Of a stretch of 64,000 bases of DNA, positions 2,412 through 63,229 are shown piece after piece. Under the pieces are notes generated by a model, which searched no databases, was not told where the DNA came from, and saw nothing but the letters and a program-made list of their open reading frames with translations. Origin of the DNA: Macrostomum lignano (Eukaryota); NCBI GenBank assembly GCA_002269645.1, contig NIVC01002033.1:1-64000 (forward strand). The letters are read 5' to 3'. The first letter of the stretch is position 1, and each line of letters starts with the position of its first letter. The position numbers were made by a program, and so were the translations under genes.

Positions 2412-5029
2412 ATGGCTCATTATGTCGCTGGAAGCTCAGATAATGTTCAGCAGGAGACGATTCTGCTTGAGCAGTTTAAACAGCAGATTGTTACTCACCT
2501 GCTGATTACCCTCGAAGTCCACAGTCGGATGGAGTGCGGGACTATCAAGACAATGACACGGATGAAGAGGACTGCGATGCGACAGTTGAATCAGCCAGAC
2601 GCTTTGCTCAAACTGATGACAATCTGCGCAGGTGATCTACTCAGCTATCTACTCATCTAAGTGCTGACGTACTCAGCTATCTACTCATCTAGATACTGAC
2701 ATACTCAGCTATCTACTCATCTAGATACTGACATACTCAGCTATCTACTCATCTAGCTACTAATCTAGCTGCTCATCTACTCATCTAAGTGCTGACGTAC
2801 TCAGCTATCTACTCATCTAGATGCTGACATACTCAGCTATCTACTTATCTAGCTACTAGCTGCTCATCTACTCATATATTTTTTATTACAGTAGGGGCTG
2901 TGTGCACCCTGGGCGCACTTTAAGCGACACTGCCACACAACCCATTCCGCCGACTCCCCTGAGCAGGCACACAAGCGCACGGATACGTACGCAGTCATAC
3001 GCACAGGCACACACTCACACAGGAGTGTACAGCGGCCCTAACTTTATTTATCGTTAGGCATGTACACTTCACTGTGCCTTGGGGGTTGGTCCTCAAGGCC
3101 GTTAATTGCACGAGCAGAGCCAAGCCGGGATTCCAATTTAGCCCCACATCTGAGCCGCTGGCACATTAGAGTGCCGCACTAGACTAGGATTCGGCCCCCC
3201 TTACTCATCTGTCTAGTCGTCTGTTTACATAGCTGCAGTACAAACAAATCTAACAGATGGCTAGTCGCCCGCAACTGGGACCTGGATTCGGCGGTCGCAA
3301 TGTACAATACCGCTGCCGACTTCCGTCTGCGTCATCGGCCGGAACGGCTGCTCACTCCGCAGGCTGAGCAGCGCCTGCCGGAGGTCCTTCGCCGCCATCT
3401 GTCCGGCGGTTTTGTCGGCTTCGATCGCTCGGGTCGGCCAGTTCGAGTCGAACTATTCGGCGCCCTGGATCTGCCCGGACTATTGCGCGCCAGTCGATGG
3501 CGCCATCTGCGCCGAGCCAAACTGCGCGAGTGCGAATTGGCGCTGCGCCTTTGCCGGCGCCAGACCCGGCGCCTTGGCCGGCCGGTGATCGGTATGACAG
3601 TGATTTTCGACATGGCTGGTGCTACGGCGCGTTTTCTATGGCCGCCGGGAGTGACCGCCTACCTGCGGCTGGTCCGAATGCTGGAGGATAATTATCCCGA
3701 ACTTGTCAGCCAGCTGCTGGTGGTCAATAGTCCCACAGTAGGCAAACCTCGATTTGGGAATGATTAGTCACAGATATGTTTGAATTGGATCTAGTCAGAT
3801 TGGTGACTAGATTAGTCAGATTGGTGACTAGATTAGTCAGATTAGTGACTAGATTAGTCAGATTGGTGACTAGATTAGTCAGATTGGTGACTAGATTAGT
3901 CAGATTAGTGACTAGATTAGTCAGATTAGTGACTAGATTAGTCAGATTGGTGATTAGATTAGTCAGATTGGTGACTAGATTAGTCAGATTGGTGACTAGA
4001 TTAGTCAGATTGGTGACTAGATTAGTCAGATTAGTGACTAGATTAGTCAGATTGGTGACTAGATTAGTCAGATTAGTGACTAGATTAGTCAGATTGGTGA
4101 CTAGATTAGTCAGATTGGTGACTAGACTAGTCAGATTGGTGACTAGACTAGTCAGATTGGTGACTAGATTTGTTAGGTTGGTGACTAGATTAGTCAGATT
4201 GGTGACTAGATTAGTCAGATTGGTGACTAGATTAGTCAGATTAGTGACTAGATTAGTCAGATTAGTGACTAGATTAGTCAGATTAGTGACTAGATTAGTC
4301 AGATTGGTGATTAGATTAGTCAGATTGGTGACTAGATTAGTCAGATTGGTGACTAGATTAGTCAGATTGGTGACTAGATTAGTCAGATTGGTGACTAGAT
4401 TAGTCAGATTGGTGACTAGATTAGTCAGATTAGTGACTAGATTAGTCAGATTGGTGACTAGATTAGTCAGATTGGTGACTAGATTAGTCAGATTAGTGAC
4501 TAGATTAGTCAGATTAGTGACTAGATTAGTCAGATTGGTGACTAGATTAGTCAGATTGGTGACTAGATTAGTCAGATTAGTGACTAGATTAGTCAGATTG
4601 GTGATTAGATTAGTCAGATTGGTGACTAGATTAGTCAGATTGGTGACTAGACTAGTCAGATTGGTGATTAGATTTGTTAGGTTGGTTCCTACACTAGTGA
4701 TATCGGTTGGACTGCATCAATAAAATATGAACTCCCAATCCGCACAGGTGTTTCCGTTACTGTACCGCCTTTGCCAGCCGTTGCTATCCACAGCTATGCG
4801 CAACAAAATCCACGTGCTCAGCAGCGACCCGCGGCAGGCTACGATGGAGCTACTGGATCGAGTCGCGTCCGACCAGCTGCCCGCTTATTTAGGCGGCGAA
4901 TTGCGAGATGAAAACGGCGATCCGCGTTGTTCGTCGAAAATCTGTCAGGGAGGACGCGTGGCGGCTGGTTACTATGGCAACGAGAGCGCCGACGGTGCTA
5001 GCGGCAGCGGAGACAGCGATATTGATTGA
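2412..5029 (+). CDS. SEC14-like (SEC14L2/3 family) CRAL-TRIO lipid-binding protein. Exons about 2412-2631 (one frameshift), 3257-3737, 4748-5029
   Basis: Splicing gives TDDNLR-R-WLVARNWDLDSAVAMY (CRAL-TRIO N motif), then GFDRSGRPV, VIFDMAG, LEDNYPE..LLVVNSP-T/VFPLLY..PLLS..RNKIHVL, DQLPAYLGG. GT-AG sites are in phase. No GOLD domain seen before the stop. Confidence 0.85.
2640..2875. repeat. Intronic minisatellite, 32-bp unit (actcagctatctactcatctagatactgacat)
   Basis: Direct tandem copies with a 32-nt period in SEC14-like intron 1. Confidence 0.85.
2885..3045 (-). repeat. Interspersed repeat, SINE/LINE-3prime-like, related to 34666-34835
   Basis: The reverse complement shares agggccgctgtacac-cctgtgtgag, tgcgtac, cgcttgt, ggaatggg and cagggtgc..cagccc with the second copy, and is followed by an A-rich tail. 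Confidence 0.55.
3785..4680. repeat. Intronic minisatellite, 21-bp unit (ctagattagtcagattggtga)
   Basis: About 40 tandem units; source of the spurious (RLVTRLV)n ORF. Confidence 0.97.
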
Positions 5030-13038: not shown

Positions 13039-13554
13039 CAAGGACTACTTAAGAACACAAGGGTTTAGTAAGAAAGGAATCTGAAACTGAGAGACATCAA
13101 AGCGGTGTTGGTGCAAGACGGTTACGAAAATTAAACTCCGATTAACTTTGTGACGAATTTATTACTATTTTCACTGTCATCTTTGCTACCATCGTGTTGC
13201 TTCTACATTTTAAACAAGTCCATGAATCGGGAAATGAGCGAATAAGTATTATTATTGTTGATTAAGTGTAGTTCCTATCATTCAATATTGTCATTATTGT
13301 TATTTTTGGGTATTTCTTCGTTTTTTGTTAAACTTCTACACCCTGTTCACGATCACCTTTTGGAGAAAATATAAATATTTTGTCGGTATACATGCATATA
13401 AAAAGCTTTATTCACTAGGCTTTAATTTCTATTCATGTATTATACACATTGTTTCAAATGGCAAAAAGGCCACTAAAACCATAGACACATGCATTCAAAG
13501 CGAATTCTGCCAATATTTGCAAGTGTAACGTCCTGTGTTCTTAAGTAGTCCTTG
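13039..13554. mobile_element. hAT-type MITE, 516 bp
   Basis: Perfect 21-bp TIR CAAGGACTACTTAAGAACACA / TGTGTTCTTAAGTAGTCCTTG, flanked by an 8-bp direct repeat GAGTCGAT (13031-13038 and 13555-13562). Confidence 0.9.
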
Positions 13555-15437: not shown

Positions 15438-15489
15438 ACTGCTGGTGAAAACAGGACTAGACTCGAAACTAAGAAGGGTATGAATAAAT

Positions 15490-16380
15490 CCCAGTTGATT
15501 TAATCCGAGTTGCTTTAATCCCAGTTGCTTTAATCCCAGTTGCTTTAATCCCAGTTGCTTTAATCCCAGTTGCTTTAATCCCAGTTGCTTTAATCCCAGT
15601 TGCTTTAATCCCAGTTGCTTTAATTCCAGTTGCTTTAATCCCAGTTGATTTAATCCCAGTTGCTTTAATCCCAGTTGCTTTAATCCCAGTTGCTTTAATC
15701 CCAGTTGCTTTAATCCCAGTTGCTTTAATCCCAGTTGCTTTAATCCCAGTTGCTTTAATCCCAGTTGCTTTAATCCCAGTTGCTTTAATCCCAATTGCTT
15801 TAATCCCAGTTGCTTTAATCCCAATTGCTTTAATCCCAGTTGCTTTAATCCCAGTTGCTTTAATCCCAGTTGCTTTAATCCCAGTTGCTTTAATCCCAGT
15901 TGCTTTAATCCCAGTTGCTTTAATCCCAGTTGCTTTAATCCCAGTTGCTTTAATCCCAGTTGCTTTAATCCCAGTTGCTTTAATCCCAGTTGCTTTAATC
16001 CCAGTTGCTTTAATCCCAGTTGCTTTAATCCGAGTTGCTTTAATCCGAGTTGCTTTAATCCCAGTTGCTTTAATCCCAGTTGCTTTAATCCCAGTTGCTT
16101 TAATCCCAGTTGCTTTAATCCCAGTTGCTTTAATCCCAGTTGCTTTAATCCCAGTTGCTTTAATCCCAGTTGCTTTAATCCCAGTTGCTTTAATCCCAGT
16201 TGCTTTAATCCCAGTTGCTTTAATCCCAGTTGCTTTAATCCCAGTTGCTTTAATCCCAGTTGCTTCAATCCCAGTTGCTTTAATCCGAGTTGCTTTAATC
16301 CCAGTTGCTTTAATCCCAGTTGCTTTAATTCTAGTTGCTTTAATCCCAGTTGCTTTAATCCCAGTTGCTTCAATCCCAGT
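15490..16380. repeat. Minisatellite, 15-bp unit (ttaatcccagttgct)
   Basis: About 59 near-identical copies; source of the spurious (KQLGL)n ORF. Confidence 0.97.
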
Positions 16381-17975
16381 TAGTCAGTCAGCCAGTCAAT
16401 CATGAGTCAATATTCTTAGTTACTGAGTAGGCTCGTACGTTTCAATGTCAGTTAAAAATGATTTAAAGTTATTTTAAGTCATTTACGGACATTTAAAGCT
16501 ACTCGAACGCACCCTAAAAATCAGTTAGATGTAAATAACAGACGTGTTACATTTATCTCATAAATCAACAAAGAAAATTAATGATATTTTATCGTAAATT
16601 TAAAATGCACTGACAGACTTAGGTGGCACGTTACAGACTTGTCCATACAGAATATCCTGCATATAATTTGTATGTAAAGTACATACAGTACTGATATAAA
16701 ATTACGTAACCAAGTGAAAAGTACGAATAACTTAATTTTTAAAGGCTTCTAGCGCATACTTTAACTATACATACTATTGAATACATACGACACTTTTGGT
16801 AAGAAAATGACCGTATAATATTGCTATAACAAGAGACAAACAGAAAACTACATGTCACATGTATAGTTTTAAAATAACTCTAAAATATTTTAAATCTTAC
16901 GCAGGGCTAAAAAATTGTTCACAAAAAGTTCTTTCTTAATATACGAATACATTTTAAGAAGACATCCAAAAGACAGTGGCCTCTGTAAGAAAATCAAAGA
17001 AAACAGAAATTATTAATGCAAAAATTAGGCATAAATTTTGACACGCGAAAATCAATTATGAATGTTCGGTAAGGTAAGAAATAAGCAAACAGTATGAAAT
17101 TACAATATGAGGCGTGTATTAGATCAGTTGTTGTGCGATTTTCATATGCATATAATGGTAAGAAAAGTCTTTGTTGCCGTTAATGAGGATTTTTAGACGC
17201 AATAAATCGAAAGAATTCGAATTAATTAAAAGTAATGAAATCTACAAGATCGTGGACATGACTAAGGTTTCATTTACAACTTACTCCTATTGGTTAACTT
17301 TACGTACTGCCCTACTATCGCGAGTAGGGAGGGAAGGCTCGCTACCTAGCCAATCAGCGAGCGAGAAGGAACGAGGGGAAAAAGAGAACGGACTGCATAT
17401 CAATTAGCTGGAGAAATGTACGCAGTCAGGGGAGGGGCGGGTGGTCATGGGAATGAGGGACTTTATCGATCCGACACACGCACACACGCAACCGGGAAGG
17501 AGAGACGTTTGATGTTATTGTTGGCCGATGGGTTATGACGGGTGGCTAATTTTAATTTTTTTGCAATCAATAATATTTTATAGTCAGTTATTAACTAAAC
17601 GAAACTCGGCAAAAGATAAACCTGCCCTTAATTTAAATCGCGAAGTTCAGCTATGTCAGTTGACGAGTTCTTGAACTTCAGGATGGCGCCCAGTCAAATA
17701 GAATAGAATTTATATCGTGGCTATACGTCCCTCATGTCACGACAGGTGGCAATTTGGCAGTTCCGGTTCGTTTGTGCATTAATAATCACCGACATTGCCT
17801 AACTTCTTTTTCAAGTATGAAATTAATAGCTGTTGCTAACTAATGTAGCTCAGCAGGATTTTATTTAGGTACACACTGTACTTTAATCATTCATCGTTTT
17901 TCCCACTCGTCTAAGCATCCAGCAATTGAGCGTCGGCAGTTCGTCGTTTCCTATTAGTCCTGGCCGCAATGTGAG

Positions 17976-18224
17976 CGGTGGCGGCGCAGGGGGGGGGGGC
18001 AGAGAGTGGCCGAGGCTGCTGCCCCCAGTTGACCACCCTCCCATCCATCCATGGGGGTGACCCACCATAATTTTTTTAGTACGAGCTCGTAATATGCGTT
18101 TTTGTGAGATTTTAGCGTAATGCGCTGGCACTGCTCTAATTCTATAAAAATTCGGTAGGAGAAGGGGTTGACCACCCATACCACTGCCCCCCCCCCCCTA
18201 ATAGGAGGTGCTGCGCTGCCACTG
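17976..18224. mobile_element. hAT-type MITE, 249 bp, inserted in the last coding exon of the zinc-finger gene
   Basis: TIR cggtggcggcgcag / ctgcgctgccactg with subterminal G/C runs, and an 8-bp TSD AATGTGAG at 17968-17975 and 18225-18232. Confidence 0.88.
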
Positions 18225-19431
18225 AATGTGAGTCCGATTGAGGTGCCTAGTCATGCTGCCAGACTGGGAGAACTTCTTGCCGCACAGGTTGCATTTGAAC
18301 GGTTTAGAGCCGGCGTGGACTCGCATATGAGTCGCTAAGTTGGATTGGCGAGAGAAGCCTCGACCGCAGACGCTGCACTTGTGCGGCTTGTCCCCCGTGT
18401 GGCCAAGTGCGTGCACCTTCAGTGCCCAACGTCTTGAGAAAGTGCGGCCGCAGTATTCGCAACTGAAGTGATGTAAATATCATAGGGTATTCTAACTTAG
18501 AGAGCAACGTATGCACTGTGACCGGATATCGACCGACCGTTTTTGGCGCACATGCATACTATACACAGCAACATTGAAAACCGCCACCCCAGACGCCTGC
18601 CTTTACCCTGCCCTACCCACCTCCGCCTGTTCTACCCCACCTCCGCCTGTTCTACCCCACCTCCGCCTGCCCTACCCCACCTCCGCCTGCCCTACCCCAC
18701 CTCCGCCTGCCCTACTCCACCTCCGCCTGCCCTACCCAACCTCCGTCTGCCCTACCCCACCTCCGCCTGCCCTACCCCACCTCCGCCTGTCCTACATCAC
18801 CTCCGCCTGCCCCAACCCAACCTCCCCCTGCCCCACTCCACCTCCGCTTGCCGCACCCGCACTTCCGGTTCGCCCCAACCGCAGCCCCCCTTTTTTAATA
18901 AATAAAGTTTGTTTTTAAGTAATTTGATATAGCTTTTGGGCACTTTTTCGAGATGGCCATAATTTGTCAGCTTTTTTATCCACTTAAAATCCATTCCAAT
19001 ATTTTGACTGATAAAATTACCACCAGGTTTATGGTTCCTGTAGGTCCTTACCGATGCTCCCGCAGATGCTCCGCACGATGCTTTCGCTTGCCTGGAGTTT
19101 TACTAGGAGGCCGGCCTGGCGGCCTGTGGCCAGTCGGTTTTATAAGGCCACCAGTGAGTTTTGGGGCGGCTGTAGGCGCTGGCATCTGTTTTAATAATGC
19201 TGCTTTTTGTTTCGGTTGCTGTTGCTGCTGTTGCTGCTCAATCTCAGGCGAGTAGATAATAAAATTGCGCAAGTCAACCTGCTCAGGCCGACCATCTTCT
19301 TCTAAGCTGGCACTGTTCTCTTCCTCTTCATCGCTGCTATCCTCGCTGTCGGTCATAAACAAAGCGGCGCATGAAACTGCAGGCCAACTATTGATTGATG
19401 ATGACACAGGACACGACTGCAGTTGGGCCAT
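18198..19431 (-). CDS. AT-hook plus three C2H2 zinc-finger protein. Exons 19431 (or 19356)-19052 and 18462-18198
   Basis: A phase-2 splice (CG|gtaagg ... cttcag|T) gives HR-CEYCGRTFSRRWALKVHALGH-TGDKP-HKCSVCGRGFSRQSNLATHMRVH-AGSKP-FKCNLCGKKFSQSGSMTRHLNRTH. Upstream are an acidic tract, polyQ and RPPGRPP. Confidence 0.85.
18590..18860. repeat. Intronic minisatellite, 20-bp unit (cctaccccacctccgcctgc), G-rich on the sense strand
   Basis: Tandem copies within the zinc-finger gene intron. Confidence 0.9.
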
Positions 19432-19764
19432 TGTGCGGAGCCTAGCTGAAATTCGTAATGTCATTTGTTCACTGTTCGTCGTTATTACCTTCGAGAATTT
19501 TACAAAAAGTACATATACAAGTTTATGGCTCGTGTCAGACAAGAATAAGCAATAAAAAACCGCGCCTGTAATTGAACTTGAAGTGCCGCGGTCAATTAAC
19601 CATCGTCTTATCTTATCTCATCTGCACCCTTTGGAGCGTAAGATGAAGACATGCATATTATAAGCACATTCCAAATGAGCTCACGCTAGCAATCACACCT
19701 AGCCTCATCGCCTCGACTTGAACCCCCCAGCCAACCCTAATTTACTGTGTTGTCCATTTCCTCT

Positions 19765-19845
19765 CTGATTGGCTAGTTCATTACCCTTCCTGCATCGCTG
19801 ATTGGTTGGCTCTACGGCTCTATAGTTTAATAATCGGCCCAATCA
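19765..19845. promoter_or_regulatory. Cluster of CCAAT boxes upstream of the zinc-finger gene
   Basis: ctgattggct at about 19766, ctgattggtt at about 19798 and gcccaatca at about 19837, roughly 350-400 bp upstream of the ATG. Confidence 0.45.
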
Positions 19846-23851: not shown

Positions 23852-26800
23852 ATGTCTAGCAAATCTGGAACTACTAAGCGCAAGTCTGAGCGAGTGCGCA
23901 CCACCAGCACTACTGAGTCTGAGGCTTCAAGCGCTGCCGCCGCTGCCCAGAGTGAAGTCTCGGCCACGACTGTTTCTCCACAGAAGCAGGTGTCTGGTAG
24001 CACTGTTACTACTACCACTACCTCTAGTCGAAAGGTAAATTTGAAAGTATCCATTTTACTGTAGAAAGGAATTTAATACCGAATTTATTGTAATAAACAA
24101 GTCTTAATTTAAAGCTAGCACCTTAGGATACCCTGAAGCACCACTGGTCTTCTGACTACTGTACTGGATGGAGGTAACAGAATGGTCCCCTGAAGCTCCT
24201 TCCTGTGGGTATCAGGCTCCCCTGAAGCTCCTTCCTGTGGGTATCAGAACTATCAGGCTCCCCTGAAGCTCCTTCCTGTGGGTATCAGGCTCCCCTGAAG
24301 CTCCTTCCTGTGGGTATCAGGCTCCCCTGAAGCTCCTTCCTGTGGGTATCAGGCTCCCCTGAAGCTCCTTCCTGTGGGTACCAGGCTCCCCTGAAGCTCC
24401 TTCCTGTGGGTGTCAGGCTCCCCTGAAGCTCCTTCCTGTGGTTATCAGGCTCCCCTGAAGCTCCTTCCTGTGGGTATCAGGCTCCCCTGAAGCTTATTCC
24501 TGTGGGTATCAGAACTATCAGGCTCCCCTGAAGCTCCTTCCTGTGGGTATCAGGCTCCCCTGAAGCTCCTTCCTGTGGGTATTAGGCTCCCCTGAAGCTC
24601 CTTCCTGTGGGTATCAGGCTCCCCTGAAGCTCCTTCCTGTGGGTATCAGGCTCCCCTGAAGCTTCTTCCTGTGGGTATCAGGCTCCCCTGAAGCTCCTTC
24701 CTGTGGGTATCAGGCTCCCCTGAAGCTCCTTCCTGTGGGTATCAGGCTCCCCTGAAGCTCCTTCCTGTGGGTATCAGGCTCCCCTGAAGCTCCTTCCTGT
24801 GGGTACCAGGCTCCCCTGAAGCTCCTTCCTGTGGTTATCAGGCTCCCCTGAAGCTCCTTCCTGTGGTTATCAGGCTCCCCTGAAGCTCCTTCCTGTGGGT
24901 ATCAGGCTCCCCTGAAGCTTATTCCTGTGGGTATCAGAACTATCAGGCTCCCTGAAGCTCCTTCCTGTGGGTATCAGGCTCCCCTGAAGCTCCTTCCTGT
25001 GGGTATCAGGCTCCCCTGAAGCTCCTTCCTGTGGGTATCAGGCTCCCCTGAAGCTACTTCCTGTGGGTATCAGGCTCCCCTGAAGCTCCTTCCTGTGGGT
25101 ATCAGGCTCCCCTGAAGCTCCTTCCTGTGGGTATCAGGCTCCCCTGAAGCTCCTTCCTGTGGGTATCAGGCTCCCCTGAAGCTTCTTCCTGTGGGTATCA
25201 GGCTCCCCTAAAGCTCCTTCCTGTGGTTATCAGGCTCCCCTGAAGCTCCTTCCTGTGGGTATCAGGCTCCCCTGAAGCTTCTTCCTGTGGGTATCAGGCT
25301 CCCCTGAAGCTCCTTCCTGTGGGTATCAGGCTCCCCTGAAGCTCCTTCCTGTGGGTGTCAGGCTCCCCTGAAGCTCCTTCCTGTGGGTATCAGGCTCCCC
25401 TGAAGCTTCTTCCTGTGGGTGTCAGGCTCCCCTGAAGCTCCTTCCTGTGGGTGTCAGGCTCCCCTGAAGCTCCTTCCTGTGGGTATCAGGCTCCCCTGAA
25501 GCTTCTTCCTGTGGGTATCAGAACTATCAGGCTCCCCTGAAGCTCCTTCCTGTGGGTATCAGGCTCCCCTGAAGCTCCTTCCTGTGGGTATCAGGCTCCC
25601 CTGAAGCTCCTTGCTGTGGGTATCAAGCTCCCCTGAAGCTCCTTCCTGTGGGTATCAGGCTCCCCTGAAGCTCCTTCCTGTGGGTATCAGAACTATCAGG
25701 CTCCCCTGAAGCTCCTTCCTGTGGGTATCAGAACTATCAGGCTCCCCTGAAGCTCCTTCCTGTGGGTATCAGAACTATCAGGCTCCCCTGAAGCTCCTTC
25801 CTGTGGGTATCAGAACTATCAGGCTCCCCTGAAGCTCCTTCCTGTGGGTATCAGAACTATCAGGCTCCCCTGAAGCTCCTTCCTGTGGGTATCAGAACTA
25901 TCAGGCTCCCCTGAAGCTCCTTCCTGTGGGTATCAGGCTCCCCTGAAGCTCCTTCCTGTGGGTATCAGGCTCCCCTGAAGCTCCTTCCTGTGGGTATCAG
26001 GCTCCCCTGAAGCTCCTTCCTGTGGGTATCAGGCTCCCCTGAAGCTTCTTCCTGTGGGTGTCAGGCTCCCCTGAAGCTCCTTCCTGTGGGTGTCAGGCTC
26101 CCCTGAAGCTCCTTCCTGTGGGTATCAGGCTCCCCTGAAGCTCCTTCCTGTGGGTATCAGGCTCCCCTGAAGCTCCTTCCTGTGGGTATCAGGCTCCCCT
26201 GAAGCTCCTTCCTGTGGGTATCAGGCTCCCCTGAAGCTCCTTCCTGTGGGTACCAGGCTCCCCTGAAGCTCCTTCCTGTGGTTATCAGGCTCCCCTGAAG
26301 CTCCTTCCTGTGGTTATCAGGCTCCCCTGAAGCTCCTTCCTGTGGGTATCAGGCTCCCCTGAAGCTTATTCCTGTGGGTATCAGAACTATCAGGCTCCCC
26401 TGAAGCTCCTTCCTGTGGGTATCAGGCTCCCCTGAAGCTCCTTCCTGTGGGTATCAGGCTCCCCTGAAGCTCCTTCCTGTGGGTATCAGGCTCCCCTGAA
26501 GCTCCTTCCTGTGGGTATTAGGCTCCCCTGAAGCTCCTTCCTGTGGGTATCAGGCTCCCCTGAAGCTCCTTCCTGTGGGTATCAGGCTCCCCTGAAGCTC
26601 CTTCCTGTGGGTATCAGGCTCCCCTGAAGCTTCTTCCTGTGGGTATCAGGCTCTCCTAAAGCTCCTTCCTGTGGGTATCAGGCTCCCCTGAAGCTCCTTC
26701 CTGTGGGTATCAGGCTCCCCTGAAGCTTCTTCCTGTGGGTATCAGGCTCCCCTGAAGCTCCTTCCTGTGGGTATCAGGCTCCCCTGAAGCTCCTTCCTGT

Positions 26801-29800
26801 GGGTGTCAGGCTCCCCTGAAGCTCCTTCCTGTGGGTATCAGGCTCCCCTGAAGCTTCTTCCTGTGGGTGTCAGGCTCCCCTGAAGCTCCTTCCTGTGGGT
26901 GTCAGGCTCCCCTGAAGCTCCTTCCTGTGGGTATCAGGCTCCCCTGAAGCTTCTTCCTGTGGGTATCAGAACTATCAGGCTCCCCTGAAGCTCCTTCCTG
27001 TGGGTATCAGGCTCCCCTGAAGCTCCTTCCTGTGGGTATCAGGCTCCCCTGAAGCTCCTTGCTGTGGGTATCAAGCTCCCCTGAAGCTCCTTCCTGTGGG
27101 TATCAGGCTCCCCTGAAGCTCCTTCCTGTGGGTATCAGAACTATCAGGCTCCCCTGAAGCTCCTTCCTGTGGGTATCAGAACTATCAGGCTCCCCTGAAG
27201 CTCCTTCCTGTGGGTATCAGAACTATCAGGCTCCCCTGAAGCTCCTTCCTGTGGGTATCAGAACTATCAGGCTCCCCTGAAGCTCCTTCCTGTGGGTATC
27301 AGAACTATCAGGCTCCCCTGAAGCTCCTTCCTGTGGGTATCAGGCTCCCCTGAAGCTCCTTCCTGTGGGTATCAGGCTCCCCTGAAGCTCCTTCCTGTGG
27401 GTATCAGAACTATCAGGCTCCCCTGAAGCTCCTTCCTGTGGGTGTCAGAACTATCAGGCTCCCCTGAAGCTCCTTCCTGTGGGTATCAAGCTCCCCTGAA
27501 GCTCCTTCCTGTGGGTATCAGGCTCCCCTGAAGCTCCTTCCTGTGGGTATTAGGCTCCCCTGAAGCTCCTTCCTGTGGGTATCAGGCTCCCCTGAAACTC
27601 CTTCCTGTGGGTATCAGGCTCCCCTGAAGCTCCTTCCTGTGGGTATCAGGCTCCCCTGAAGCTTCTTCCTGTGGGTATCAGGCTCCCCTAAAGCTCTTTC
27701 CTGTGGGTATCAGAACTATCAGGCTCCCCCGAAGCTCCTTCCTGTGGGTATCAGGCTCCCCTGAAGCTCCTTCCTGTGGGTATCAGGCTCCCCTGAAGCT
27801 CCTTCCTGTGGGTATCAGAACTATCAGGCTCCCCTGAAGCTCCTTCCTGTGGGTATCAGAACTATCAGGCTCCCCTGAAGCTTCTTCCTGTGGGTGTCAG
27901 GCTCCCCTGAAGCTCCTTCCTGTGGGTGTCAGGCTCCCCTGAAGCTCCTTCCTGTGGGTATCAGAACTATCAGGCTCCCCTGAAGCTCCTTCCTGTGGGT
28001 ATCAGAACTATCAGGCTCCCCTGAAGCTCCTTCCTGTGGGTATCAGAACTATCAGGCTCCCCTGAAGCTCCTTCCTGTGGGTATCAGAACTATCAGGCTC
28101 CCCTGAAGCTCCTTCCTGTGGGTATCAGAACTATCAGGCTCCCCTGAAGCTCCTTCCTGTGGGTATCAGAACTATCAGGCTCCCCTGAAGCTCCTTCCTG
28201 TGGGTATCAGGCTCCCCTGAAGCTCCTTCCTGTGGGTATCAGGCTCCCCTGAAGCTCCTTCCTGTGGGTATCAGGCTCCCCTGAAGCTTCTTCCTGTGGG
28301 TATCAGGCTCCCCTGAAGCTCCTTCCTGTGGGTATCAGGCTCCCCTGAAGCTCCTTCCTGTGGGTATCAGGCTCCCCTGAAGCTCCTTCCTGTGGGTATC
28401 AGGCTCCCCTGAAGCTCCTTCCTGTGGGTGTCAGGCTCCCCTGAAGCTCCTTCCTGTGGGTATCAGGCTCCCCTGAAGCTCCTTCCTGTGGGTACCAGGC
28501 TCCCCTGAAGCTCCTTCCTGTGGGTGTCAGGCTCCCCCGAAGCTCCTTCCTGTGGGTATCAGGCTCCCCTGAAGCTCCTTCCTGTGGGTGTCATGGTCCC
28601 TTGATGACCCTGCAATAGATTCCCCTGACTACTATTTAGCTAAAATAAACAAATATCTAATGAATCAAGGACTAAAACTCCAGATGACCAAGTCTTCTCT
28701 AACTGGCGCCCCAACTGTTGGCGCCGCCTCAGGCGAGCCGTCAACCTCGGGCGGCGCCGCTGGCGCCAGGCGTCGCTCCCACAGCCCGTTAGCGATCTCT
28801 CGCGAACAAGAAAAAGAAGAATTGGCTCATTTGAACACGCAGCTGGCCTGCTACATTGAATTTGTCCGGTCGCAGCAGCAGTCTGCCGATACAGTCCGGC
28901 GTCAATATGAAACCTTGAGCGAATCGATGACTCACGAACGGGAAGAATCTAGCGGCTTATACGAACGAGAGATTAACGGCCTTCGTCATCAGTTGGATAA
29001 GCTGGCCGGAGAGAGGGCGGCGCTGCAGTTGGCCTTGGACAAAGCCAATGGAGAACGAGCCGAGGCTGACAAGTTTGTTTAGCTTTTGTTGTTGCTGTTG
29101 TTGTTTTGCTAACTGTAGTGAAAGTTTATTACGAGCTAATTTATATCCTACGAAGTATCCCTTCCAAAACTGCGAAAGTTGTTCTAGCAATGTCCAACAC
29201 TATTTTGGTTTTCGGAGTTATGATATTTCAGTTTTGTGATATTTCGGTTTTGGGTCAATGAGAATTGCCCGCCGAGGTTTGCCCGCAATGCTTTTTTTCC
29301 TGCAGCGCATTTATCCACACGGCAGATTTTGTCTGCATTGCCTCCCCAATGCTTAGTAAGTTTTAATAGAGATTTACCCGATCAAAACGTCTTGATAGTA
29401 ACTGCATATCAAATGCATATATTCTTTTGGGGGGAGGCAATGCAGACAGAATCTAGCTGCCAAATGCGTTGCAGGAAAAAAGCATTGCGGGCAAACCTCG
29501 GCGGGCAATTCGTCTGTGGGAATTTCTCGTGCTCCCTTCGGTTTTATGATACTTTTGGTTTGTGATGGGCGTTGCTAGCAAGTTCGGAGTTATTATATTT
29601 CGGGCTTGTGATGCCACCCACTCAAATGCACTTAAGACGCTACTCAGTGATTCTACAGCTACTCTAGAACGCCATAGATACTGTCTAAGACCTCTTTCGC
29701 CTAGATCACCTTCGCCGAAACCTCTTTCGCCTAGATCACCTTCGCCGAAACCTCTCGCCTAGATCACCTTCGCCGAAACCTCTTTTGCCTAGATCACCTT

Positions 29801-58074: not shown

Positions 58075-59138
58075 CTAAAATGGCAATACAATTATGATGA
58101 CAAAAAACATTTTTTCAAGTAAAAAAATGATGAAATTATTTGAACTTGTTGATTTTGTTTATTGTTGCATTAAAGGGTTTAGAATTATGGAGGTGATAGA
58201 GGTCTATAGTGTGGTAGCCACTATGCTGAGAACCACTTCTATTTCATTTCTTACTGGCCTGCCTAAGTATATCTGGCCTGCCATCACAAATTAAAGCCAT
58301 AATCTATTTTGTGACCACTAGCGCAACTAGGGGGCGGGGGCGGGGGGGGGGGGCCGCCCCCCCCCCCCTTACGGGTGACCGTCTGACCAAACAGAATAAG
58401 ACATGATTTTTGTTCATTGATGATATCGAGGGATTGAGGTAATACTAACATCTTTTCTGTTTACAGTTTAGATTTAGAAGGAAAGCCTACTGGAGTAAAG
58501 TAACCAAATATGTCGCTTGGCAGGCAGGCAGCCCCGGCTGGGCACAGCAGACTGCAGTTTTGTAAGCTTAAGCTAAACCGCCTTCCTCCCTATGCCTATT
58601 GGCCCTTTTGCTGTTGGCAGTCTGACCCTCTTCCCTTCCCTTCCTATCCTACCCTAAACAAGCTAGCCCCCCAACCCAAGCCAACCATGCCAAGGCCCAA
58701 ATGTACAGTAGTTGTTATTGAGTCTTCAGTGTTGTGTTTTAATCGAAATGTGTAGTATTGGACATTAGACAAGGGAAGGAAGGAAGAGTGGTGATGGACG
58801 TGGTCCAAGGGAAAGGAAATGTGTGACTGAGCCTGAGGTGGGCCTAGTCTTGGTGCCTCTACACTGGTGCCTGCCTTCCCCACCCCATCCCCACCTCACC
58901 CTTCCCAAAGAAAGATGTACATGTAAAGAGGATCGATGATGTACAGTACAAGTTCAATTTCTGACTGTTATTTCTACTGTTGTTATTGCCTACTGGTACT
59001 GGTATAAGAGCAGAGCAGAGTTTTTAACATTAGGAATACTTGGATATTAACTGTTCTAACGGCAATTGTCTGTTGACTTGACTTATTAAGATTTCAGTCA
59101 ATTAAGTAATTAAATCAACACGCAAAAAGCTGCAAAGC

Positions 59139-62100
59139 CATAGTTGCCACACCTGCGCTATTTTAGCGCTACTGCGCTATTTTGTTTCAGCTGCGCTACT
59201 GCGCTATTATCTTTGAAATGCTTTCAATTCTGCGCTAAATGAGTTTTATAGTTACACTAAGTCAACATTGTTTCCCTTCCTCTAAGTCTAAGTCAAAGCA
59301 CACTCTTTACTTTCTTTAAGAATTGTGTAGAAAGAACTAAAAAGATGCAGTCAGTCGGGGCTTGCCACTTGGCCTTACCCATCCCTTAGTCTGGTGGGGT
59401 GTTGCTGATTGGGGCCCTGATCGGATACCCCAAGTTTCAAGCCCTACCCCCCCCCCAAAATGGCCAATTCCTATTGGCTTAGCAAATAGTCAATCCCACT
59501 CACCCCCATGGGTCTGCTTTTTATTCCACTTTAAAATCAAAACATGTTATCGAACTTAAACTAAATAAACAAGAAAGTGTCTGAGTCCAGACATAGAGTT
59601 CTTGTATCAAGGACAAGCATAATGCCTCTTAAAACAAAGCCAAGTCAACGAGGCACAAAATGGGACAACGATTGGCTACAAGAAAAAGACAACTCTGGCG
59701 TTCTAATCTCTAAGTGGTGTCAACAAGACAGAATTGAAGGCAAGGCCTATTGCAGGGCCTGCTCCAGGTCATTCTCAATAATGCAGCATGGAATCAGCGC
59801 GATTCGTCAGCACGCTGATGGACAAAACCACAAAATTCAAATATCTGCTATTGGTCAACAAAAGACCATGACAAGTTTCTTCTCGGTTATGAACGACGAT
59901 CCAGCAAAGCAAGCTGTGAGTTCGACTACTATCAGCGAGCAAGCAATGGCGGCCAATTTGCGTTTTTCATTACTGGTGGCCCAAAAGGATCTGTCATTTA
60001 ACCTAATGGACCAGTTTACATCGCTGCTTCCGGTTGCATTTCCGGACAGTGCTATCGCTCAGCAATTTGCCTGCTGCAGAACTAAAACGACCTATCTTGT
60101 TAACGAGGCATTGGCACCATTCGCAAAGGAGCAAATGTTTGACCTTCTCCGCAAGTCGCATTTCTCCATTATGCTGGATGAGGGCACTAAACGTGATCGC
60201 TCCTACCTGGCAGTACTTGCAAGAGTATTCTCCACTGAGCACCAAAATGTCCCAATTGTAATGATTGGCATCAAAGAGCTGACGGACAGCACTGCTGAAG
60301 GAATGAAGACAGTTGTTAAGGAACTACTTCGTGAAGGGAATATACCTGTTAAGCATGTTCTCTCGGTGATGACTGACTCATGCAATGCAATGCGAGGTGA
60401 GCAATTGCAGAACTAGCTTGTTCTTTTATATGAATGTCCTAATTACCTATAATAATAAGTATGTACTTATAATGAAAGTTTGTGACTGCTACATGCACTA
60501 CTATTTACATGTCTCTACTACTGTCTCTACTATGTCTCTACATGTACATTTGCTATTACTACGCTCGTGCGAGTAGTAGCAACTGTCTTATATTATAGAA
60601 ATAGTATACTAGTAAGTAGTAACGTACGTGATACAGTAATCTAACAGTTAGCAGTTTTTTTTCACAACCTTATTACAACATGTGAATGACATGATAACTT
60701 TGTAAGTTTTTATGGAATGTTTAATGAATAAAACTATTTATCCTAACATTCCGAAGGTCAAAACAATGGCCTGCTTGCTAAACTGAAGGAGGAGCTACCG
60801 CACCTAATCGATGTTGGCGGGTGTAGCCTACACCACGTGCACAACGCTGTCCAATATGCGGTAAAGGCTTTGGACACTTCTGGAGAGACAGAAGGACTCC
60901 TGGATGATGTTTATAACAATTTTCGGTTCAAAAGTCGACGCAAAGCCTTCCATCAGGTATGCCTCTTGTGCGAACAAAGTTTATTTCTGGTTTTAAGAAT
61001 AAGAACAATTACAAATACATATATTCTGTCTTTGTGATACTTTTATCCAACTTAACTGAACTTCTGTCGGGCATAATTTATTGAGATAATAAAAAGATCA
61101 TAGTAAGTACACCATAAAGCAAATGAGCAAATTATAGCAAAATGCACATGTTCTTTTACCTATTACTATCGCTGATAGTGATATCATCAGTTTGTTGCCC
61201 CTGAACTCTATGAATAAATGCTTCTAGTTCTCTCCATATTATTCTAAACAGTACCGCTCATATTGCTCTGCCACCCACTGTTGCATTTTAGATTCAGACA
61301 GCACTGAATCTGACTGAGCATGCATTTATCCGCCGAGTGGAGACCCGTTGGCTCCAGGTGCTAATAGTGGTGCGTCGTATTCTCGAGCAGTGGCCTGCGC
61401 TGCAGCATTTCTTCTCAAACCAGCAGAACATTCAGAATGACCGAGCTCGCCGCATCAGGGAGGCCTTGACCGACAAAGCTCTAGCACGCCTCCAGTTTCT
61501 CGAACAAGCTTTGCCCAGGTGCGAGAAGATTGAGAAGCTATTTCAAAATGAGTCTACTCAGGTCCACCTTCTTTCATCGTCACTGGACGATCTCTGCGGC
61601 TGCATCCTGACGTGCTTTGTCCGAGAAGACGTTTTTAATGAGACCAACTCTCTGTCAGACCTCGCCGATCGTGCCAAGGAACGCTCCAATCAGTTGAACA
61701 ATGCAAGTCTGGTGATTGGTGGCAAGACCCGTGAGACTGTCGACAGACTGTCGCCAATTGATCGCATTGGATTCTACAAGAGCGTTCGCGATTTCTATTG
61801 TGAGTTAGTGCAGAGGCTTTTTTCATATCTGCCACTGCAGAACAAGATCCTCCGAGCTCTTCGCTTTGTCGACCCTAACTATCTACTCGGAGAGGACTTC
61901 AACTTCGACAGAACCTTGCTAAGGGTCGCCAAAACGATGAGCACCGTCATCGCAGTTGATGAGCTTGATGAGCTGCGTCTCGAAGTCACCAGGTTGCGTG
62001 TCTCAAACTCGGAGCTCGAAAAGTCGAATCCTGAGAAGTTCTGGTCATGCCTGCCCACTGCGACTTACCCGCTGCTATCAAAGCTAGGGCGCAGTGCATG

Positions 62101-63229
62101 CTGCATTCCGCATGGCAACGCGGACAGCGAACGGTTTTTAAAGTGGTTGGCCAACGACTTAACGAAGCAGCGGAACAAGCTTTCCGAGTTTACGCTCAAC
62201 TCTCTGCTCACTATCAAGACCTGGCTGAAGGCAAATTTGGCCACTGCACATACAGTCACAATTGAACCAAGCCTAATTGCCATTGGCTTTGAAGCCCGAA
62301 GTAAAGCGGCTGATCGCGCTCGATTAGAACAGCGGCAGCAGGCGATGAAGAGACTGCAGAAGAAGATGGAGGAACAGCGCGCGATTGAAGCTGCAGCGAA
62401 GAAGGCTCAAGAGGAACAGCAGCAGCAGCAGGAGGATTTAGTGACGCAGCAGCAGACTGTTGACGAGATGCGAAGGAAGGCGCAAGAAATGCTGGCAGCT
62501 GCATCGAAGGCGGAAGCTGCATTCCGAAAACGGCTTAAGCGACAGAGCGTGTCCAGTCAGCCTAGGGGCGGTAACAAAATTGCGCGAATCGAAGGTGCTA
62601 CTGCCGCCGGACCCTCTAACAAGTGAAGTGAACATTGAAATTTTTGCTAGTTTGACTTTTATGTTAACTGAGCTGACGGAGAGTTAGAACTTAGTTTGAT
62701 TTCAAAATAAAAAAATGAGTTTAAAATCGAAATCAATCGACTATAGTGACAGATGCTTTTTACAAAGCGATTCCGGAACCAATAGAAGAAAAAATGTAAC
62801 TAATAATTGTTAAGAACATAATAAAGTAAGAAATTCGTACGATTTTAAAACTACCTTTAGTAAGTCAAGCCTTTCCCTAAAGTTATCAAATATCTCTAGG
62901 CTTTTTCTCGTCTAGGAGCTACTCGAAAATAGTTATTCACATACTTGTGTAGGAGTATGTGTTCGAGCTATATGTACATGTATGTGTACTTGCTGTGCAA
63001 GTGTAATCCAATCCAATTGTCAGTAACTGAAATAAGTTTTTTATTATCATTTCGTTACTCAAATAAACAGGTTAATGTAGCTTTTCGGTTTCCTAAGACT
63101 TGACTTACTATTATTTATTAATCCGTGGTTGCTTTTTAATGATTACATAACTTTAAAACTAATTATTTTACGCTGCGCTAAATCTTTTCTGCTGCGCTAA
63201 TATTCTTTTATTTTCCTGTGGCAACTATG
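59139..63229 (+). mobile_element. Full-length hAT DNA transposon, 4091 bp
   Basis: 13-bp perfect TIR CATAGTTGCCACA / TGTGGCAACTATG, an 8-bp TSD TGCAAAGC (59131-59138 and 63230-63237), and clustered TGCGCTA subterminal repeats at both ends. Confidence 0.95.
59622..62626 (+). CDS. hAT transposase (about 769 aa). Exons 59622-60396, 60757-60956, 61292-62626
   Basis: BED-like finger (YCRAC..HADGQNH), MLDEGT, TDSCNAMRG, CSLHHVHN (CxxH), ETRWL, and the dimerisation-domain motif IPHGNADSERF. No stop or frameshift after splicing. Confidence 0.92.

Follow-up and report, generated by a model that had tools for sequence, protein, structure and literature searches.

Genes whose ends derive from transposons are known from plants, where miniature inverted-repeat transposable elements (MITEs) of the Tourist and Stowaway groups provide examples, and transposon-derived coding segments are known from vertebrate genes. 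Among cut-and-paste DNA transposons, an 8-bp target-site duplication (TSD) is typical of the hAT or P superfamilies. Here we describe a locus of this kind in the flatworm Macrostomum lignano, in which a 249-bp non-coding element bounded by terminal inverted repeats (TIRs) lies in the last exon of Mlig009774.g1, a gene on the minus strand of scaffold NIVC01002033.1 that encodes a protein with three C2H2 zinc fingers. The stretch of DNA analysed, hereafter the window, comprises positions 1 to 64,000 of this scaffold in assembly GCA_002269645.1. A literature search for comparable cases found nothing specific. We estimate at roughly 80% the probability that the element is a short non-autonomous cut-and-paste DNA transposon, likely of hAT type, which inserted into the last exon of the zinc-finger gene and whose insertion is old and fixed.

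Results

The element occupies positions 17976..18224 and, like the gene features described below, is given in window coordinates and read on the minus strand unless stated otherwise. It is flanked by a perfect duplication of AATGTGAG that does not extend past 8 bp, with the far copy at 17968-17975 and the gene-side copy, which reads CTCACATT on the gene strand and contains the last finger 3 His codon and the following Ile codon, at 18225-18232. On the gene strand the element starts with CAGTGGCAGCGCAG (18211..18224), a terminal inverted repeat that is identical in all three copies of this locus found in the assembly, and ends with the reverse complement of CGGTGGCGGCGCAG (17976..17989, plus strand), the two termini matching at 12/14 positions. 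Past a 12-bp indel there is a second inverted match of 14 nt, G11CAG against CTGC11, which is perfect, and the RNA fold of the element has an energy of -109.5 kcal/mol (z = -4.0 versus shuffles). Using first-order Markov simulations (n = 300 sequences of 64 kb), we estimated how often an exact 8-bp duplication would enclose inverted termini matching at 12/14 positions or better and lying 80-1500 bp apart, and obtained an expectation of 0.01 such structures per 64-kb window (3/300 simulations had one). The window has two of them outside a palindromic minisatellite, one being the 249-bp element. The structure that an original prediction, made from the sequence alone, had placed just past the last His of finger 3 is thereby confirmed.

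The insertion point falls 3 bp, or one codon, past the last zinc-binding His codon (CAC, 18230-18228), the next codon being ATT, and finger 3 is left intact. Beyond it the gene reads CAG TGG CAG CGC AGC ACC TCC TAT TAG, which specifies a new tail of QWQRSTSY followed by a stop (18198..18224), with the stop codon itself at 18200-18198, 25-27 nt inside the element. The original prediction had read this entire tail from the TIR; it is indeed element-derived, but the inverted repeat contributes only the first 14 nt, and the last 13 nt, which encode the last four residues and include the TAG, belong to a sub-terminal segment that is absent at the far end of the element. Deleting the element together with one TSD joins ACT CAC ATT to GCG GCC AGG ACT AAT AGG AAA CGA CGA ACT GCC GAC GCT CAA TTG CTG GAT GCT TAG, so that the reconstructed empty site (...THIAARTNRKRR...) restores the reading ...THI-AARTNRKRRTADAQLLDA-stop, in frame, as had been proposed. 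This former tail of 18 codons and its TAG (17911..17967, stop at 17913-17911) are now part of the 3' untranslated region (UTR), as is the element beyond its internal stop, again in agreement with the original prediction. Two candidate polyadenylation (poly(A)) signals, ATTAAA (17887-17882) and AATAAA (17865-17860), lie past the former stop at 17860..17887, and direct reading found no poly(A) signal of the ATTAAA/AATAAA type within the element. An open extension of 18 codons has a chance probability of ~0.4 and by itself provides no statistical evidence for the old tail, which is credible because the insertion sits within an indispensable zinc-finger codon context.

The gene model into which the element has inserted consists of two coding exons separated by a single phase 2 intron. 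The coding part of exon 1 (19052..19431) begins at the MAQLQ start used in GenBank, with further in-frame ATGs both up- and downstream of it, encodes an acidic and poly-Q region and a basic cluster, GKRKHR, and ends at the donor CG/GTAAGG. The intron (18463..19051) contains a 20-bp minisatellite at 18607-18852, and the length of this array varies between the subgenome copies of the locus. The coding part of exon 2 (18198..18462) encodes the three C2H2 fingers, Ile and the 8-codon new tail followed by TAG. The fingers are readable as C-x2-C-x12-H-x3-4-H repeats and match Pfam zf-C2H2 in three stretches (E=3.7e-19; score 68.4 bits, cut-off 25.2), placing the protein in the C2H2 family, and the finger region on the gene strand ends ...SGSMTRHLNRTH-I. 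The spliced product is 214 aa from MAQLQ and matches GenBank PAA61420.1/PAA90725.1 (P0051), a 5'-partial model with three extra N-terminal residues, across the shared length. All five protein models of this cluster, including UniProt A0A1I8H3J2, A0A1I8IFT9 and A0A1I8HFA4 as well as the GenBank entries, end in QWQRSTSY. The GenBank annotation of the assembly was built on RNA-seq transcript assemblies (PMC5730564), and on that basis Mlig009774.g1 is expressed and the model end inside the element is transcript-derived. A full-text literature search found no expression record for Mlig009774.

Three further observations concern this gene. The UniProt model A0A1I8IFT9 (P0053) uses an alternative acceptor and so lacks CEYCGRTFSR, a loss that would destroy finger 1; this is probably a prediction artefact. 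Motifs of the form CCAATCAG, three CCAAT-box-like sites, lie at 19740-19810 on the minus strand, ~300 bp upstream of the first ATG of the gene, and occur again at 17340-17360 on the plus strand, ~500 bp downstream of the old stop. Finally, neither a word-indexed protein search nor a full HMMER scan, which covered 1.84 billion representatives with the N-terminal region plus finger 1 as query, yielded an orthologue outside M. lignano, and the matches other than the M. lignano cluster, such as an insect ZAD-type protein (P0201), align to the zinc fingers alone.

We next compared the locus across the assembly, which holds three syntenic but diverged copies, each flanked upstream by a lamin-like gene and downstream by the same small gene. 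One of these, L003, is the window locus on NIVC01002033.1 (100% identical to the window) and carries the whole 249-bp element. The other two share scaffold NIVC01000104.1: L001, in inverted orientation and annotated as gene g2, has a whole element of 252 bp, and L002 has only its gene-side half. All three copies (3/3) are occupied at the same site, with the same duplication. In L001 the CTCACATT duplication is present on both sides and the far terminus reads CAGTGGCGGCGCAG, giving an inverted repeat of 13/14 that is better than that of the window. L002 has suffered a deletion of ~131-133 bp (window equivalents ~18074-17942) that took away the far half of the element, the far TSD and 26 nt from the start of the old tail, so that in this copy the element can no longer move and the old tail cannot be recovered. 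About 70% of assembly Mlig_3_7 is reported to lie in 3-copy paralogous blocks, read as S, L1 and L2 subgenomes with ~2.2% single-nucleotide polymorphism divergence (PMC10733133), and the three copies of our locus fit these known subgenomes of a neopolyploid. The copies are also mosaic, L001 and L003 sharing 99.2% identity across 10.7 kb downstream of the intron and only 91% upstream of it (L003 9300-21240); together with the identical coding sequences (CDS) of L002 and L003, this suggests recombination or gene conversion between subgenomes.

The copies differ in very unequal measure along their length. Element copies differ by 5.7-8.3% in substitutions, plus indels, and neighbouring non-coding DNA, in keeping with its mosaic nature, by about 0.4-7%. 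In exon 2 the difference is 0-0.4%, and across the whole CDS there are 0-6 substitutions in 645 nt, or 0-0.9%: L002 equals L003, and L001 departs from both by three synonymous and three non-synonymous changes (ratio of non-synonymous to synonymous change, pN/pS, ~0.29). The former tail has one non-synonymous change in L001, in addition to its truncation in L002. From these patterns we conclude that the element and the old tail evolve in the manner of non-coding DNA, and that the gene has been kept intact with its new tail.

A second element in the same region provides an internal reference. At 13039-13554 (L003 15887-16402), in intergenic sequence ~5 kb from the 249-bp element, lies a 516-bp element whose inverted repeat, CAAGGACTACTT, is perfect over 12 bp and which is flanked by an 8-bp duplication. 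L003 and L001 both carry it, and the corresponding position in L002 (16588-16595) is a clean empty site with a single octamer, which demonstrates that comparison of the copies can detect empty sites. The 516-bp element would either have inserted after the copies diverged or have been excised or converted away. For the 249-bp element, the copies demonstrate at the level of their sequences that insertion predates the divergence of the three loci or that it spread among them long ago. The original prediction had suggested a recent, possibly polymorphic insertion, to be checked against homeologs; that check, performed here in silico, speaks against it. Because all three copies are occupied, the CDS is nearly invariant and the element has decayed, the insertion is, on this comparison, old and fixed in this line, not recent.

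As to the class of the element, its terminal inverted repeats, its perfect 8-bp TSD in both the window and L001, its small size and its lack of coding capacity make the label MITE structurally apt, and the element is single-copy in all sequence searched. A six-frame translation search against 5.8 billion protein clusters found no protein homologue, and neither Rfam nor ARAGORN gave a known-RNA or transfer RNA (tRNA) match, ruling out a short interspersed nuclear element, tRNA or known-RNA origin. The element begins with CAGTG, which fits the hAT terminus YARNG, and it has the 8-bp TSD of hAT elements, a feature shared by the P superfamily; its inverted repeat is unrelated to CATAGTTGCCAC, that of the only hAT transposon with which it was compared. 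On balance we consider it most likely to be a hAT-type deletion derivative.

The hAT transposon used in this comparison lies in the window itself (59139-63229, 4091 bp), and is full-length; its 12-bp inverted repeat, CATAGTTGCCAC, and its 8-bp duplication, TGCAAAGC, are both perfect. Of its open reading frames (ORFs), at 59577-60416 and 61337-62626, the second contains Dimer_Tnp_hAT (E=1.4e-8) and, where it aligns (66% of the ORF), shares 99% identity with an M. lignano protein of UniProt (P0055), and the transposon is possibly still mobile. With this transposase as query, a protein search retrieved two proteins only, one from M. lignano in UniProt and an unrelated one in ENA. At the window edge, an ORF on the minus strand (165-773) encodes a fragment of a P-element-type transposase (TNP-like_RNaseH_N, E=6e-21). 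Neither the hAT transposon nor the P-like fragment shares its termini with the 249-bp element. A perfect-looking palindrome of a G-run and a C-run, TAGGGGGCGGGGGCGGGGGGGGGGGGCCGCCCCCCCCCCCCTTAC, at 58322-58370 recalls the G12/C11 runs beside the inverted repeats of the element, and could be either a collapsed relative of it or a homopolymer artefact of long-read assembly. The window is also unusually rich in minisatellites, for example at 24186-28604, 3792-4686, 15487-16381 and, within the zinc-finger intron, 18607-18852; such arrays include 130 copies of a 32-mer, 43 copies of a palindromic 21-mer and 60 copies of a 15-mer.

Discussion

Our analysis supports a model in which an old, fixed insertion of a short DNA transposon has replaced the end of a zinc-finger protein. 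Translation runs 8 codons into the element and stops at its TAG. Under this model, the transcript would extend past that stop, through what is left of the element and through the former 18-codon tail, as far as the original poly(A) signals. Its 3' UTR would thereby have grown from ~70 nt to ~350 nt and would now include a strongly self-pairing segment. Such transcripts should escape junction-dependent nonsense-mediated decay, since the new stop lies in the final exon; escape of last-exon stops from this pathway is a general rule (stated, for example, in PMC1854916). The gene would work with a transposon-derived tail, and the simplest reading is that a short unstructured tail was replaced and that the replacement was tolerated and became fixed.

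Several points weigh against this model or parts of it. Blastn revealed no second copy of the element in the 64-kb window or the three loci (~64 kb, with ~43 kb outside the window), and none was found among predicted proteins (six-frame search, 5.8 billion clusters) or in Joint Genome Institute metagenome contigs (exact-pattern scans), so that its membership of a family and its hAT origin are putative. The P superfamily also generates 8-bp TSDs, and the window holds a P-like transposase fragment. The reconstruction of the old tail follows from the logic of the TSD alone, given that neither protein collection contains an orthologue outside M. lignano, and read-through of the element and the site of polyadenylation are deduced from the published annotation and from sequence signals only. 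Lastly, the copies are mosaic, and gene conversion could in principle have spread the insertion, as opposed to its inheritance by all copies.

If the insertion is as old as it seems, one may ask whether its retention reflects more than tolerance. The tail swap could have been adaptive and kept in the three subgenomes since before whole-genome duplication, either through loss of the RKRR-containing tail or through the G12...C11 element gained by the 3' UTR. We regard this as unlikely. The RKRR cluster of the former tail has a counterpart in GKRKHR, a comparable basic stretch still present just upstream of finger 1, so the tail swap does not imply a loss of nuclear import, and the case that the insertion would have cost the protein a nuclear localization signal is weak. 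Across the three copies the new tail shows no difference in its 27 nt, an invariance that, with P(0 differences) at ~0.14 per pair on a 6-8% background, appears statistically indistinguishable from chance, and these comparisons do not show the transposon-derived tail to be an exaptation. Were the swap adaptive, it would mean changed localization or post-transcriptional control of a lineage-restricted zinc-finger regulator, and it would represent the exaptation of an otherwise orphan, single-copy transposon relic.

A quite improbable scenario is that one copy received the insertion recently and the others acquired it by gene conversion or assembly duplication, in which case empty alleles could still segregate. 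The clear mosaicism of the three loci, indicative of recombination or conversion among them, and the fact that L001 and L002 share one scaffold in an assembly with ~36% of its length in chimeric scaffolds (PMC10733133) are what this scenario would lead one to expect. It is contradicted by the extent to which the element copies themselves have diverged, which, with indels and the deletion in L002 on top of their substitutions, at least equals the 2-7% of the surrounding non-coding DNA, so that any spread is older than most of the divergence at the locus. The element-derived tail also ends the UniProt models.

We find it harder still to believe that the configuration arose by chance or by an insertion not due to a transposon, such as templated repair near the G/C homopolymers, and that there never was a different tail. 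The failure to find another copy of the element in the sequence searched would be accounted for in this way, and the separate palindrome at 58322-58370 illustrates that such runs arise in this genome. Yet the simulated expectation is very low, the better inverted repeat of L001 indicates that the termini were originally near-perfect, and the window has two other clean elements with 8-bp duplications, one of which has an empty site. Moreover, the duplicated 8 bp hold an essential His codon, and the sequence beyond must therefore once have been contiguous coding sequence.

DNA transposons create introns in some eukaryotes. That the element is spliced out here as a new, introner-like intron, from a donor CA/GTGGCA to an acceptor ...GGCCAG/G past the C-run, joining ...ATTCA to ...GACTAATAGG (18223/17961) in a protein that still ends in the near-unchanged old tail THI-Q-TNRKRRTADAQLLDA, is nevertheless the least credible account, for although the junction is in frame on direct reading and a pyrimidine run (C11) lies ahead of the candidate acceptor, the donor TCA/GTGGCA shares just +1 to +3 with MAG/GTRAGT, in contrast to the true donor of this gene, the RNA-seq-based models of all three copies terminate at the element's internal TAG, and L002 is without the proposed acceptor and still has a CDS identical to that of L003.

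This locus is a clean and datable case, in a flatworm that serves as a model of regeneration, of a protein-coding gene whose end was rewritten by a DNA transposon. As a single event it is unsurprising: the phenomenon is known, the instance is tidy but ordinary, and no long-standing question is opened by it. What M. lignano adds is that its three subgenomes act as internal replicates, which here distinguish an old insertion (the 249-bp element, present in 3/3 copies) from a young one (the 516-bp element, with one empty site). Such subgenome comparison could be extended genome-wide and used to time transposon activity relative to polyploidisation.

With respect to known systems, the 516-bp element resembles the 249-bp element in its 8-bp duplication and in having an inverted repeat, perfect over 12 bp; unlike it, the 516-bp element is intergenic and subgenome-specific, and thus behaves as the original prediction expected of the 249-bp element. 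The latter is like non-autonomous hAT elements, or hAT-type MITEs, in its 8-bp TSD, short CAGTG inverted repeats, length of 249 bp, non-coding nature and strong fold-back, and a full-length hAT with an 8-bp duplication is present in the same window. It is unlike them in that no multi-copy family was found in the sequence searched, in that its inverted repeat bears no relation to the one of that full-length hAT, and in the long G12/C11 runs that adjoin its own inverted repeats, which are unusual. As in known cases of transposon exonisation, a transposon in the terminal exon supplies a stop and a few residues and joins the 3' UTR, with the host domain intact, and unlike in those cases any function of the transposon-derived part itself would be hypothetical in M. 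lignano. It differs from them also in its setting, as the host is a free-living flatworm and the insertion is fixed across the three subgenomes of a neopolyploid.

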